Shown: piece by piece, positions 33,429 to 41,253 of the stretch
How the letters are laid out: each line of letters starts with the position of its first letter
Numbering within the stretch: the first letter of the stretch is position 1
Sequence record: NC_049851.1
Strand: one strand, 5' to 3'
Length of the DNA: 64,000 nucleotides
Notes under the pieces: generated by a model
Database searches by the model: none
What the model saw: the letters and a program-made list of their open reading frames with translations, nothing else
What the model was told of the DNA's origin: nothing
Made by a program: the position numbers and the translations under genes

Positions 33429-33635
33429 ATGAACAACGTAGCGTCCCGCATTCTCGGCATCCTGAGCACCGAACTCGATCTCGAACCCGAGCACCTGAGT
33501 GTCGACCATTCGTTCCACTTTTCGGAATTCGAAACCGCACTGGACGACGAGTTCGATCTTCTGTCGGGTGCCGTCGTCTACGAATTCATGTCCGTGCGGG
33601 ACATGGCATCGCGCATCGAGCGAGTTCTGGCGTGA
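33429..33635 (+). CDS. Acyl-carrier-protein-like protein lacking the DSL loop
   Basis: Aligns by eye to AcpP (RILGILSTELDL...SF...EFETALDDEFD...SVRD); the [10 protein letters not shown] segment is absent. Confidence 0.65.
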   Translation: MNNVASRILGILSTELDLEPEHLSVDHSFHFSEFETALDDEFDLLSGAVVYEFMSVRDMASRIERVLA

Positions 33636-33952
33636 AGCTCAGTCCGCTACAGCGCAAGATTATGGTGCTGGTGCGTGACGCGTTTGTTACCTACTACAGC
33701 CACACCCAGCTTTTCATTTGTAACGAGGTGAAGACGGCCGCGCACGCGCTCAATCGATCAGTGGACGATTCGTCCGTGAACGACTTGCTGTGGGCTATTC
33801 GTGAAGCACTCGGAGGCCGTAATACGCTGGGTGATTGGCTCATGTGGGAGTATGACCCTGCTGTCTATCTGACGGGCACAGAGCGAAATCGTATCCTCAA
33901 CCTGTGTCGAGAAGCTTGGCTCGACGCTATTCTCGAACGGGGTGAAATTTGA
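33632..33952 (+). CDS. IC...RxAW paralogue family member
   Basis: LFICNEV ... ALGGRNTLGDWL ... REAWL. Confidence 0.7.
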   Translation: MKLSPLQRKIMVLVRDAFVTYYSHTQLFICNEVKTAAHALNRSVDDSSVNDLLWAIREALGGRNTLGDWLMWEYDPAVYLTGTERNRILNLCREAWLDAILERGEI

Positions 33953-34329
33953 AAGACGATGACGAGTACTTCAGCGCGAAAGAACTGGAAATCCTGAATC
34001 TGGTGCTGGAGCGGTTGGAACACGCGGCAGAGACCCCGGTGGATGGTGCCCATCAGTACCTGTGCCTGCACATCGGCAGCGTCGGGCGCGAACTCAGCTA
34101 CTCCAAAAAGCGCTATTTCTTCCATCGCCTATTCGGGCTCGACACCACGTACACGAAGGCGGCGCAAGCCCTGATCGAACAGATCGCACAAGCACTCGAC
34201 GGCAAGAGCGGCAACACGCTTCAGGGTTGGGTGAGTCTGCGCACTGGCTACATACCGTACGCAGATGTCATGAACGCGGCGCGTGATGCGTGGCTTCGTC
34301 GTGCACTCGAAATCGGGTATTTCGGATGA
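33949..34329 (+). CDS. IC...RxAW paralogue family member
   Basis: EILNLVLERL..TPVD..YLC.H resembles 56209-56586; ends RDAWL. Confidence 0.7.
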   Translation: MKDDDEYFSAKELEILNLVLERLEHAAETPVDGAHQYLCLHIGSVGRELSYSKKRYFFHRLFGLDTTYTKAAQALIEQIAQALDGKSGNTLQGWVSLRTGYIPYADVMNAARDAWLRRALEIGYFG

Positions 34330-34667
34330 GCACCGCACTGAATGCACGCCAGATGGAGATCATGGTGTTTGTGTGCGCTGCCCTCAACTACCGTGATTCG
34401 GCCTATCCGCAGTACATCTGCCAAGCTGTGAAAGACGCGGCATGTGATCTGGACGCCTGTGTCTGGTACGGGTTCTTGCGCCCATACCGCAGTCAGGTCA
34501 ATTCGATCCTGCGCATGATCGATCAGGCATTGGATTGTCGGACGTTGGAGCGTTGGCTCGCGGGCAAGGTTTCGTTCAACGGGTTCCCGGCTGACCAGCT
34601 TGGACTTTTCAATCAATGTCGGGCCGGTTGGCTCGAAACCATAATCGCGCGAGGGCGCATCGAATGA
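34326..34667 (+). CDS. IC...RxAW paralogue family member
   Basis: YICQAV ... ALDCRTLERWL ... RAGWL. Confidence 0.7.
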   Translation: MSTALNARQMEIMVFVCAALNYRDSAYPQYICQAVKDAACDLDACVWYGFLRPYRSQVNSILRMIDQALDCRTLERWLAGKVSFNGFPADQLGLFNQCRAGWLETIIARGRIE

Positions 34668-34879
34668 AGAAATATGTGGGAATTGCACTGATCTTGGGGC
34701 TGATGCTTGCCGCGCTTGCGGCTGTCGCAAACCCGACATCGGTGGTGATCGAAACGCGGTTCGGCTACATCCGCATCTACGACGTGTTGACCCCGGCAGG
34801 TCACCAGTGTACGATTGCGTCCTCCGAAGCGGACAGCAACAGTGCGGGCCGCGCATTGGCCATGCAGTGCTACAAATAA
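34664..34879 (+). CDS. Small secreted protein
   Basis: MKKYVGIALILGLMLAALAAVA signal peptide; two Cys. Confidence 0.65.
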   Translation: MKKYVGIALILGLMLAALAAVANPTSVVIETRFGYIRIYDVLTPAGHQCTIASSEADSNSAGRALAMQCYK

Positions 34880-34887
34880 GGAGAATC

Positions 34888-38746: not shown

Positions 38747-38902
38747 TGGCCTCGATTACCACGGAAACATTCGGTCTGCTCTGGTTCGTGGCCGGTATCT
38801 GTGCCACGCTGATCATTCAGGGCATTTGGCGTGTTCTGAATCCGCCTGAAGACAAGGTTCAGGACGTGGACAAACGCCGACGCCAACAACGGGAGCACGA
38901 CC

Positions 38903-40345
38903 ATGAGTGAACTCTGGGAAAATCCCTTGTTCTCGCTCGAAGAACGTCTGGAGATCGCGGCCGGTGCCGTGCAATTCCACAAGCGCATCATTGCCCAGTT
39001 GCGTGCGAAGTGTGCGGAGGCCGCTGTGAAACTGGACGAGGTTTCGCGCAACGCCGACTCGTGGCACTGCGACTGCAACGCCATCGACGACGTGGCTGAC
39101 CGGCTGCGCGAACTGGGTGACGCACGATGACGTTGCCCGACTCGTTTTACAGGAAGCAGCACGACTCGATCCAGCGCTCGTTGGCCCGGCTATCCGAAAA
39201 GCTGAAGTTGTTGCGCGACGCGTGCCCGCACCTGAACGTGCAGAAGAAGGCGCGCTCGGACACCGGTAACTGGAGCCGTAGCGACGACCGCTACTGGTAT
39301 GACTGCACGTGCCCCGCGTGTGGCAAGCACTGGACGGAGGACCAATGAACGTGAACGACGCGTTGAAAGAAGTGATGCACGAGATACAGCACATGCCGGT
39401 CGAAGAGTTGCGTGCTCTCCACGAAGCCTCCAAGAACGGCCCGTGGGCCGAGGTGTTCCGTGCACTCTATCGTGATGCTGTCGACATCGAAGCCCCGGAA
39501 GAAAGTGCGGTTCCGAGCATGGCGTGCGTTGGTCGCAAAATCAAGGGTGAAGTTGTTTGGTACACGCGACCGAAACGTGGCTACCTGTATCAAGTGGCCG
39601 ATCCGTGCTTCAAGATCGAGGGCCCGACGTTCGAGGACTGGGCACGTGATCATGGCTACGAACTCAGCACAGATGTTGAAGGTGACTACGAAAGTCAGAG
39701 GACGCGCGCCGCATTCGAAGGTTGGAAAGCGGCTAAAGCTGGAGGCTAAATGACAAAAGATACGCTGAATATGCTCATCATGGACCTGCAAGAAGAAGGT
39801 TCGGAGTTGAGCGAACGCGCAGCCGTCTCCATCCACAAACTCCGACGCGATCTCGGGTTCGCGCGGGGCCGGTTGCGTGCGATCACTGCGCAGAACGAAC
39901 GGCTGGAAGAAAGCGCAAGCCTGCACACGTGGCGAGAGTCCGAAGAACAGCGGGCACAACGTGGAGCAATGATGTGATGGATCGTGAAGAATTAAAGGTA
40001 CTGGCGCTCGAAATGGGTGTCGGTGAAATGGTCACCCGCAAAAAGACTGGTAAGGACTGGTTCTTTGCCTCGGAAATGACGGGCAACGAATTGCTGGCCT
40101 ACGGTGAAGCCGTCCTAGCGCGGGCGGGTAAGCCTCCGCGCCTCGATCTGCATGCGTCGTTCGAGCAGTGGTGGACGCACGGCATGAAGGATGGAGAGGA
40201 ACGTACCGATGTCATGCGACAGATGCGTGTAACTTGGGACAAGTTTGGCACGTACGAACCGTATCGGAAAGACTGCCAAGATTCGTTCACGTCGTTTGCG
40301 GCTTGCTACGCACTTATCTACACAGGAGAATTTGGTTATGCCTGA
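38903..40345 (+). other. Run of five small coupled hypothetical genes (38903-39130, 39127-39348 with CP...CTCPAC, 39345-39749, 39750-39977, 39977-40345)
   Basis: Consecutive ORFs with ATGA/TAAATG overlaps and GGAG(G) RBSs. Confidence 0.6.
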
Positions 40346-40562
40346 AATCATCAGCGCCGGTCAACTGCCGGGAAACAAACGCTACGAAGCCACGTGCTCG
40401 AACTGCCGTACGCGTTTCTCGTTCCTGCAAAAGGAAGCACAGCACGGCTACGACCGCAACGACAGCTACCTGTCGATTAGGTGCCCGCTCGCTGGGTGTG
40501 GACACATGGTGAACGTGTCGACCAGCACCAGCGCGGGTAGCTCTTGGTATGCGGATCGCTAA
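40338..40562 (+). CDS. Small zinc-ribbon protein
   Basis: CSNC...CPLAGC. Confidence 0.65.
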   Translation: MPEIISAGQLPGNKRYEATCSNCRTRFSFLQKEAQHGYDRNDSYLSIRCPLAGCGHMVNVSTSTSAGSSWYADR

Positions 40563-40852
40563 TGGCCATCATCGACACGATGCCTGCGACCCATCTGGAG
40601 TTCGCGAAGGACCCGAACGAGACGCGGCCCGAAGTCCTGTGGGCCGAGATCGAGCGTCTGCACGCTATGGCCTACCACTCGAACGGCACCCTGTGGCAGG
40701 AACTCGCAATCGAGGAAAAGATGAAGCGCATCAAGATGGAGGCCGGTGTCATGGCCAACATCCGGGACTTGCTTTGTTCGGTGACCGGGGTTAAACTGGA
40801 TACCCTTACGATTCAACGTATCCTCAAAACCGCACAGGGAGAGCAAGCATGA
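40562..40852 (+). CDS. Hypothetical protein
   Basis: TAATG overlap. Confidence 0.55.
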   Translation: MAIIDTMPATHLEFAKDPNETRPEVLWAEIERLHAMAYHSNGTLWQELAIEEKMKRIKMEAGVMANIRDLLCSVTGVKLDTLTIQRILKTAQGEQA

Positions 40853-41253
40853 AGACGAAAGAGATTCTGAATCTACTGCTGGAGATCAATCGGGCTGTGG
40901 CACGGGCCCCCGACAAACCTCTGGGCTTGGGCACCGTCGAAACTTTGGGTCGTGCCATCGAGGCGCTGAGCAAGAAGCAGAAGCGTAAGTTCGAGCGGCA
41001 TGTCAACGACTGGTTCACGCGTGAGGTTGCCCGCATGTCGGCTACCAAAGCGCATCGCATCGACGGCTGGGAGACGCTGGAAGAGTACGGTTTCGAGGTG
41101 CATGGTGGGACGGACGATGCCCCCGTCAACGACTACCAAGAACTGCAACACGCAATCGAGCGTGAGACCGGCGTAAAGATTCCGCTGTTCGTGCTCTACC
41201 ACACGACCATCGAGGGCATCATCCAGTACATCATTCACGGAGGCGCACAATGA
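40849..41253 (+). CDS. Protein with C-terminal ACP-like domain lacking the Ppant serine
   Basis: LEEYG-[insert]-NDYQELQHAIERETGVKIP...TTIEGIIQYI aligns to AcpP helices II-IV. Confidence 0.6.
   Translation: MKTKEILNLLLEINRAVARAPDKPLGLGTVETLGRAIEALSKKQKRKFERHVNDWFTREVARMSATKAHRIDGWETLEEYGFEVHGGTDDAPVNDYQELQHAIERETGVKIPLFVLYHTTIEGIIQYIIHGGAQ

Follow-up and report, generated by a model that had tools for sequence, protein, structure and literature searches.

The 64,000-nucleotide stretch of DNA analyzed here (the window) corresponds at 100% sequence identity to positions 186001-250000 of the record of Burkholderia phage BcepSauron (MK552141.1), a 262,653-bp lytic jumbo myovirus of the genus Sarumanvirus that infects B. 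cenocepacia, and we find that this phage is predicted to encode about ten domains of the acyl carrier protein (ACP) fold in five proteins: gp118, gp350 (two domains), gp366, gp417 and gp424 (five). A sixth protein, gp343, may contribute an eleventh family domain. To judge from their alignments, most of these domains cannot take phosphopantetheine at the canonical site, a conclusion that is firm for the first ACP-like domain of gp350 (D1), and the family is under purifying selection where this is measurable (gp343 and gp350 D1). The best explanation as a whole, to which we assign a probability of roughly 0.4, is that a phage ACP gene may have been turned into unloadable binding modules, some of which would compete with the AcpP of the host.

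An earlier sequence-only reading of the window had proposed four ACP-like domains in three genes, three of them lacking the serine that carries the cofactor. The genes are BcepSauron_343 (68 aa), BcepSauron_350 (273 aa) and BcepSauron_366 (134 aa), and the GenBank product of each is hypothetical protein. That proposal now stands firmly for gp350 and probably for gp366 and is left open for gp343, while by profile comparison the family is larger phage-wide than the domains then noted, with gp417, gp118 and gp424 to be added.

ACP-like domains of gp350 and gp366

Besides Pfam we employed an AcpP-type hidden Markov model (HMM) built from 31 viral ACPs (IMG/VR) and E. coli AcpP, which was run on all six-frame open reading frames (ORFs) of the phage, the speed filters being disabled; a phage-family profile of eight phage domains from which canonical ACPs were left out; and a combined HMM of ACPs and phage domains. 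Pfam E-values were computed over 24,736 models, the gathering score of Pfam PP-binding (PF00550) is 20.8 bits, and the window protein set comprises 134 annotated proteins. The parts of gp350 are as follows.

35520..35804, plus strand: gp350 N-terminal domain (residues 1-95), small, unlike ACP and with remote relatives
35805..36035, plus strand: gp350 domain 1 (D1, residues 96-172), predicted ACP-fold domain with Glu129 at nt 35904-35906 and an acidic helix II
36054..36305, plus strand: gp350 domain 2 (D2, residues 179-262), ACP-like, with Ser221 at nt 36180-36182

The whole gp350 protein passes the PP-binding cutoff at 30.4 bits (E 4.6e-7), and PP-binding is the best family for each ACP-like domain when scanned alone (20.7 bits and E 4.9e-4 for D1; 17.8 bits and E 0.004 for D2). 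PHROG 5934, annotated as acyl carrier protein, matches D1 at E 9.5e-5, and solved mitochondrial-type ACPs match it at E 0.0011 with GLDENDRQ aligned on GMDSLDLN, an alignment that places Glu129 at the serine position and thus bears out the Ser-to-Glu replacement noted earlier from the sequence. The serine that the same reading had assigned to D2 is likewise present, as Ser221 in QINSADAG, where it stands in an atypical N-S-A context; in a leave-one-out comparison the observed score of D2 was reached by 1 of 2000 shuffles. On these scores chance is excluded as the source of the ACP likeness of gp350. Relative to BcepSaruman, which is 97% identical to its sister phage across the window region, D1 has a ratio of nonsynonymous to synonymous substitution rates (dN/dS) of 0.13, and a clean insertion or deletion of 288 nt, which keeps the frame, leaves BcepSaruman without D2.

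The N-terminal domain of gp350 has no Pfam match, is matched by phrog_2231 (unknown function) at E 0.001 and, in a full HMMER scan, is matched over residues 7-75 by two metagenomic proteins, P0004 (212 aa) and P0005 (135 aa, two copies), at E ~3e-4. The motif W...A.RGI..DL..R.G is common to these two proteins and to residues 7-75 (window 35538-35744), and the N-terminal domain holds 14 of the 16 nonsynonymous changes that separate BcepSauron from BcepSaruman in gp350.

40849..41253, plus strand: gp366 (134 aa), with a basic N-terminal part (isoelectric point (pI) 9.7) and an acidic, ACP-like C-terminal half

The C-terminus of gp366 matches PP-binding at 15.8-17.1 bits (E 0.007-0.017), under the cutoff, and the match spans profile positions 36-67 only, that is, helices II-IV. 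PP-binding matches at E<=0.05 were found for gp350 and gp366 alone among the 134 window proteins, and from the E-value over all Pfam models the per-model probability for gp366 is ~7e-7, or ~1e-4 allowing for 134 proteins. Against the phage-family profile it scores 13.3 bits, as high as which none of 2000 shuffles came; hhalign gives a probability of 55-66%, and gp366 is the second non-seed protein of the window with the combined HMM (E 0.044 at Z=134). Helices II-IV would occupy approximately residues 94-130 (nt 41128-41238) behind a helix I-II loop that exceeds that of ACP in length, and the serine position falls on Val93 (nt 41125). Single-sequence AlphaFold2 (AF2) returned an unusable model at a predicted local distance difference test (pLDDT) score of 47.7, with a helix order compatible with ACP. 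The C-terminal half of gp366 is best read as a diverged ACP relative, for which chance is an unlikely source of resemblance, and it is likely unable to take the phosphopantetheine arm. With Val93 in place of serine and the shuffle result above, the earlier view of gp366 as an ACP-like protein without the serine is upheld as probable.

Residues 52-113 of gp366 (window 41002-41187) also weakly resemble the C-terminal signature region of the complex I subunit NuoC/NDUFS3 (PDB phmmer E 0.027; NCBIfam PRK06074 E 0.049), in three short blocks whose spacing is the same in both, and this stretch shares residues with the presumed helix I and loop of the ACP-like half. The likeness is probably due to chance.

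The status of gp343

33429..33635, plus strand: gp343 (68 aa, pI 4.3), possibly a shortened ACP-like protein that lacks nine residues around the DSL motif

gp343 is a real gene, with a GGAGG ribosome-binding site and with five synonymous and no nonsynonymous differences from BcepSaruman. It had no match in Pfam, PHROG, NCBIfam or PDB sequence searches and was not recovered by the phage-family-only profile. With the combined HMM it scored 8.2 bits (E 0.017 at Z=134) and was the best non-seed protein of the window, a score that was reached by 5-7 of 2000-3000 shuffles, and hhalign aligned 64 of its 68 residues across a 9-residue gap with a probability of 53% (P 1.3e-4). According to HMMER and hhalign the gap removes edlgaDslD, whereas a MAFFT alignment against ACPs alone takes away the nine residues ahead of the serine, sets S28-F29 on S36-L37 and leaves helix II gapless (Ser28 codon at nt 33510). 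Because two placements of the gap are possible, loss of the serine from gp343 is not established. The sequence-only reading had described gp343 as ACP-like with its DLGADSLD loop deleted; the 9-residue gap is real, but neither the homology nor, with Ser28 in the serine column of the MAFFT alignment, the serine loss is established.

When supplied with an ACP alignment, AF2 folded gp343 into a three-helix bundle (helices 3-16, 31-42 and 56-67) at pLDDT 93, an outcome that is alignment-driven, and Foldseek of this model returned ACPs as top neighbours (TMq 0.6-0.76, best E 0.03). The independent BFVD model of gp343 superposes on the ACP-alignment model with a template-modelling (TM) score of only 0.36. 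Taken together, gp343 is suggestively ACP-like, and chance resemblance is also possible.

These observations bear on whether the duplicated ACP domains might instead be decaying remnants that drift without specific function, the resemblance of gp343 being a product of chance. That all members are ORFans with low scores would fit such decay, as would the failure of every curated library and of the phage-family profile to find gp343, the disagreement between its BFVD and ACP-like models, and the presence of gp350 D2 in one phage and its absence from the other. Decay sits poorly, however, with the purifying selection seen where it is measurable, with the persistence of all members as intact ORFs in both phages and with the scores of gp343 and gp366, the two highest of any non-seed proteins in the window set of 134, and we consider it quite improbable.

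Further members and extent of the family

61189..61728, minus strand: gp417 (179 aa), with a C-terminal ACP-like domain at approximately nt 61192-61494, absent from the earlier reading
Record 69670-69921, outside the window: gp118 (83 aa), 21 bits with the AcpP-type HMM
Record 250639-252492, starting 639 nt past the window end: gp424, with five tandem ACP-like repeats

gp417 carries Asp127 at the serine position in the motif DLGYTDEAYQM. It has no Pfam match at E<=0.05 and scores 11.3 bits against the phage-family HMM, a value that none of 2000 shuffles equalled, with an hhalign probability of 74.5% against the phage family (P 2.7e-5); it is 98.9% identical in BcepSaruman. In gp118 the corresponding motif is FDDLDLTDFLMALEDEF, with Asp37 at the serine position, and the Pfam PP-binding score of 13.8 bits lies under the cutoff. 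The BcepSaruman orthologue of gp118 is already labelled acyl carrier protein-like protein.

gp424 reaches 23.9 bits with Pfam PP-binding (E 4.9e-5), above the cutoff, and 21 bits locally with the AcpP-type HMM; its GenBank label, Peptidase (M16)?, was rejected for want of Pfam support. In this protein an N-terminal domain is followed by a proline-rich linker, by two ACP-like repeats and, past a second linker rich in Asp and Glu, by three further repeats, and the serine position of repeats a to e is taken by E128, D222, Q384 (or Y385), H483 and S574, respectively. From residue 1 to ~525 the DNA of gp424 is nearly identical in the two phages, whereas the last repeat is strongly diverged, having been swapped or having diverged (dS 0.70, dN 0.30), and S574 of BcepSauron lies in an atypical G-S-V context while repeat e of BcepSaruman reads GWDSMD, a canonical DS motif. 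By this comparison gp424 is a mosaic gene.

Among solved sequences, the phage-family profile matches 124 distinct ACP sequences at E<1 (best E 6.3e-10), and the best 60 of the 124 are all ACPs. Each seed compared with the other seven phage domains in leave-one-out fashion scored 6-25 bits, a score reached by at most 1 of 2000 shuffles except for gp118 (31 of 2000); against ACPs plus the domains of other proteins gp118 scored 25.5 bits, which none of 2000 shuffles reached. A second profile iteration added no further members, and gp415, tried as an extra member, was rejected, its score being matched by 13-589 of 2000 shuffles. The PP-binding cutoff is passed by gp350 and gp424 and not by gp366, gp118, gp417 and gp343, which are linked to PP-binding only via the family-specific profiles. 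The best scores with the NCBIfam ACP models were 32 bits for gp424, 23 bits for gp118 and 18 bits for gp350, with no match for gp343, gp366 or gp417, and no phage protein reaches the equivalog cutoffs of TIGR00517/PRK00982 (66-106 bits).

Loss of the cofactor serine

The cofactor serine is kept in two of the ten domains, gp350 D2 and gp424 repeat e, each C-terminal in its own protein. Elsewhere the position is occupied by Glu129 (gp350 D1), Val93 (gp366), Asp127 (gp417), Asp37 (gp118) and, in gp424 repeats a to d, by Glu, Asp, Gln and His; all 32 canonical ACPs of the seed set (31 viral and E. coli AcpP) retain DS[LIM]. Since the serine is absent from most of the domains, these proteins are not to be filed as functional carrier proteins. 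It is the terminal domains with serine that vary between the two phages, and those without serine that are conserved.

The exact retention of serine in the C-terminal domain of both multi-domain proteins, and the canonical D-S-M-D of repeat e in BcepSaruman, raise the alternative that the family consists of carriers after all: gp350 D2 and gp424 repeat e would be phosphopantetheinylated by a phosphopantetheinyl transferase (PPTase) of the host and would carry acyl or aminoacyl groups, with the serine-less domains serving, as in tandem-ACP megasynthases, for spacing or as scaffolds for docking. From the canonical ACPs of Ralstonia phage RSL1 and Achromobacter phage Motura it follows that the lineage has had a carrier role. 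This alternative must nevertheless accommodate the dispensability of gp350 D2, absent in BcepSaruman, the atypical contexts N-S-A (D2) and G-S-V (BcepSauron repeat e), and gp118, gp366 and gp417, which are without any serine-bearing domain. Nor was a machinery to serve such carriers found: the Pfam scan of the 134 window proteins detected no PPTase, fatty-acid or polyketide synthase (PKS) gene, as the sequence-only reading had stated, and the statement extends to 402 of the 446 proteins phage-wide, among which no loading, condensing or transferase enzyme or PPTase was found and no member of the ACPS, fatty acid synthase (FAS), PKS, nonribosomal peptide synthetase, AMP-binding or Dlt families was seen (E lists to ~1e-4 to 0.06). 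The proteins outside that scan are confidently annotated replication or structural genes. We judge the carrier alternative unlikely. The GenBank acetyltransferase gp100 and acyl-CoA oxidase gp248 were rejected as possible partners, both being without Pfam support, and an all-against-all phmmer comparison found no recurring partner gene adjoining the ACP-like genes.

Five of the eight serine-less domains have Asp or Glu at the serine position, in domains of approximately 22% Asp plus Glu that are paralogues and not independent. The evidence that these residues mimic a phosphate or its charge is marginal, if suggestive, because the domains are acidic in composition and share their ancestry.

Helix II and acidity

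gp118 and gp350 D1 are the two most AcpP-like members and keep the equivalents of D35, D38, E41 and E47 of helix II, which in gp118 reads DDLDLTDFLMALEDEF. Most domains of the family have a pI of 4.0-4.8, and gp424, with its Asp/Glu-rich linker, carries a net charge of -57. Acidity of this order could also mark generic acidic decoys unrelated to the partners of ACP, that is, DNA mimics, anti-restriction proteins or inhibitors of nucleases and toxins that reuse an acidic helical bundle. Colicin immunity proteins belong to the ACP-like fold class, the genes lie in early-type clusters amid many small genes of unknown function, and an expansion of paralogues is typical of arms-race genes. The sequence similarity, however, is specifically to ACP, the residues kept by gp118 and D1 are those of partner recognition, gp424 repeat d is near neutral and the overall pI of gp366 is 6.3; PADLOC moreover gave no tie to defence systems, and there were no matches to anti-defence families. 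A generic acidic decoy is in our estimate improbable.

Distribution and history

Relatives of gp343, gp350, gp366, gp118, gp417 and gp424 beyond BcepSauron and BcepSaruman were found neither among 5.8 billion proteins or 1.8 billion representatives nor in INPHARED (tblastn), IMG/VR or metagenome contigs (two scans), and all members are present as intact ORFs in both phages. By these searches the family is specific to the Sarumanvirus pair. Homologues being limited to these two phages, deep alignments are not buildable, and the family alignment diverges too far for loci to be sought by pattern.

By terminase identity, the nearest relatives with a sequence are RSL1 (59%), BCSR5 (52%) and Motura (44%). 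The complete genome of RSL1 encodes one canonical ACP, ORF083, with GGDSLD and 84.6 bits with the AcpP-type HMM, and three profiles gave no other ACP-like match in it; the first 50 kb of Motura encode one canonical ACP with DLDSLD and 63.8 bits. BcepSauron is without a canonical ACP, its best score with the same HMM being 21 bits. We infer as the simplest history an ancestral single, Ser-bearing phage ACP, followed in Sarumanvirus by loss of the serine, duplication and divergence.

Synteny does not show gp118 to be the positional orthologue of the RSL1 ACP: the RSL1 ACP follows the gp130 orthologue and that of BcepSauron does not. Outside the window BcepSauron encodes RtcB (E 1.8e-119), probably gp130; the RSL1 orthologue of gp130 stands immediately before the canonical ACP. 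The NAD-dependent ligase gp116 and gp118 have as neighbours an NAD-salvage pair made up of gp112 (phosphoribosyltransferase) and gp114 (adenylyltransferase). Among IMG/VR contigs, L037 and L046 encode ~390-aa proteins in which an N-terminal, canonical Ser-bearing ACP domain is fused to a long uncharacterised C-terminal region, and L047 encodes a 181-aa ACP fusion of the same kind.

A model for the unloadable domains

On the reading that we prefer, in which the family supplies unloadable binding modules, an ancestral phage ACP gene would have lost its carrier role in the BcepSauron/BcepSaruman lineage, and duplicate copies would then have diverged into protein-binding modules that need no cofactor; sigma-70-like promoters of the host type would drive their expression, probably early in infection. 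gp118, gp350 D1 and, less clearly, gp366 would compete with host AcpP for ACP-binding enzymes, and the unloadable domains would block or redirect ACP-dependent enzymes in the manner in which apo-ACP inhibits glycerol-3-phosphate acyltransferase, while the more diverged repeats may have acquired other targets. As the acidic recognition helix is kept in gp118 and gp350 D1, competition with host AcpP is the most economical model, and a decoy mechanism is plausible. Potent inhibition of growth and of glycerol-3-phosphate acyltransferase (PlsB) by apo-ACP was described by Keating, Carey & Cronan (1995), as cited in PMC3896788, and the mitochondrial ACP (mACP) of Plasmodium works without the cofactor as a binding subunit (Falekun et al., doi 10.1101/2021.04.13.439690).

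Several points weigh against this model. A review (PMC3896788) reports that apo-ACP is not bound by SpoT, and titration of SpoT is thus less likely unless the holo form is mimicked by Glu or Asp. Three of the gp424 repeats (a, c and d) have a helix II that is neutral or basic, and mimicry of AcpP can therefore not be general to the family. The serine kept in two domains, together with GWDSMD in repeat e of BcepSaruman, suggests that some genuine carrier function survives. The structure models are of low confidence (gp366) or alignment-driven (gp343), and the gp343 model, which required an ACP alignment, is not independent evidence. We infer early expression from consensus promoter matches alone, and the PADLOC and anti-defence results tie the family to no defence system.

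Promoters and genomic surroundings

Sites of the form TTGAC[AG]-N16-18-TAnnnT number 56 in the genome against 6.4 in shuffles and are concentrated in blocks of small genes. Those that precede the ACP-like genes of the window are listed below.

33370..33398, plus strand: sigma-70-like promoter TTGACG-17-TATAGT, 31 nt upstream of gp343, a consensus match only
34787..34815, plus strand: sigma-70-like promoter-like site upstream of the gp348-gp351 run that includes gp350, weaker (9 of 12 matches) and by consensus only
37693..37721, plus strand: sigma-70-like promoter-like site at the head of the gp356...gp372 run that includes gp366, a consensus match only

Other intergenic sites of this type in the window lie at 36508 and 42721. 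These consensus matches suggest that the ACP-like gene clusters are transcribed by the RNA polymerase of the host, as is typical of early genes. A 20-bp perfect palindrome, GGGCCACTATATAGTGGCCC (33385-33404), is centred on the -10 element upstream of gp343, and many of the 56 sites have GGCCCC...GGGGCC palindromic spacers, which may be operators or combined terminator-promoter elements.

Directly downstream of gp343, gp344-346 belong to a 17-member family of paralogues (~105-155 aa), the largest in the phage, whose other members are gp390-403 and gp443 (window 33633-34667, plus strand, and 51991-56916, minus strand; record 260518-260940). Its GenBank labels are scattered (aminotransferase DegT?, histidine kinase?, HTH Cro, UvrD C-term), and Pfam matches to RMF (ribosome modulation factor) at E 3e-5 probably belong to it. 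gp341 (window 32204-33238), which has three internal repeats of FPFN...Y.N..R, and gp325 (25772-26593) are paralogues (E 2.6e-20), as are the tandem genes gp413 and gp414 (window 60135-60574, minus strand; E 9.9e-13), which probably account for two Imm_superinfect (superinfection immunity) matches at E 3.7e-16. Outside the window the phage also encodes a TacA1-like antitoxin (E 7e-6), NADAR, an MmcB-like protein and two DUF3175 proteins. gp438 (record 258665-259225) is labelled GTP pyrophosphokinase and matches only HD_4/HD (E 1.7e-15), the (p)ppGpp-hydrolase-type domain of RelA/SpoT; it would thus be an alarmone hydrolase and not a synthetase.

Relation to known systems and significance

The canonical phage ACPs (PHROG 5934, RSL1 ORF083, the Motura carrier protein and the IMG/VR ACPs) share with the BcepSauron family the PP-binding fold family, small size, acidity and a phage origin, and those of RSL1 (ORF083) and Motura come from the same jumbo-phage clade. 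They are, however, single-copy, score 64-85 bits with the AcpP-type HMM and keep DS[LIM], whereas BcepSauron has about ten domains that score at most 21 bits, eight of ten of which are serine-less. To our knowledge, tandem-ACP synthases have the serine in every repeat and are fused to or work with catalytic domains; gp424, unlike them, has serine in its last repeat only and is without a catalytic domain. The arrangement of ACP domains in series, five in gp424 and two in gp350, resembles the tandem ACPs of polyunsaturated fatty acid and polyketide synthases (mupirocin didomain ACP, PDB 2l22).

The mACP of Plasmodium and other apicomplexans (doi 10.1101/2021.04.13.439690) is, like the BcepSauron family, an ACP homologue that has lost the cofactor site where the cognate FAS enzymes are absent. 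It differs in being eukaryotic and single-copy, with Isd11-Nfs1 as its partner, whereas the phage family is viral and expanded and has Asp or Glu at that position in five domains. Apo-ACP of E. coli, for which competitive inhibition of glycerol-3-phosphate acyltransferase and growth arrest are described in the work of 1995 as PMC3896788 cites it, supplies the mechanism proposed for gp118 and D1; its toxicity, an artefact of overexpressing a protein that belongs to the host, differs from what in BcepSauron would be an evolved viral factor.

A more far-reaching version, which we hold to be doubtful, is that in Sarumanvirus an ancestral phage ACP has given rise to a set of ACP mimics that cannot be loaded, some of them imitating the phosphodiester of the holo form with Asp or Glu, and that these would occupy ACP-dependent enzymes of the host early in infection. 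Their targets would then be phospholipid and lipid A acyltransferases, AcpS, Fab enzymes, acyl-homoserine-lactone synthases or an ACP-dependent defence or toxin enzyme, with the consequence that membrane synthesis would be reprogrammed or a host function disarmed, and this would be the first described viral strategy of carrier-protein mimicry. ACP is among the most connected proteins of the bacterial cell. If unloadable copies jam or redirect the enzymes that depend on it, they would constitute a new route of host takeover and a natural means of inhibiting the synthesis of lipid and lipid A in Burkholderia. Mechanism aside, the family would offer a clean case of a phage auxiliary metabolic gene that changes its role: canonical in RSL1 and Motura, the gene in Sarumanvirus appears to have lost its catalytic residue, multiplied and acquired a new role, a parallel to the mitochondrial ACP of malaria parasites, which has no cofactor.

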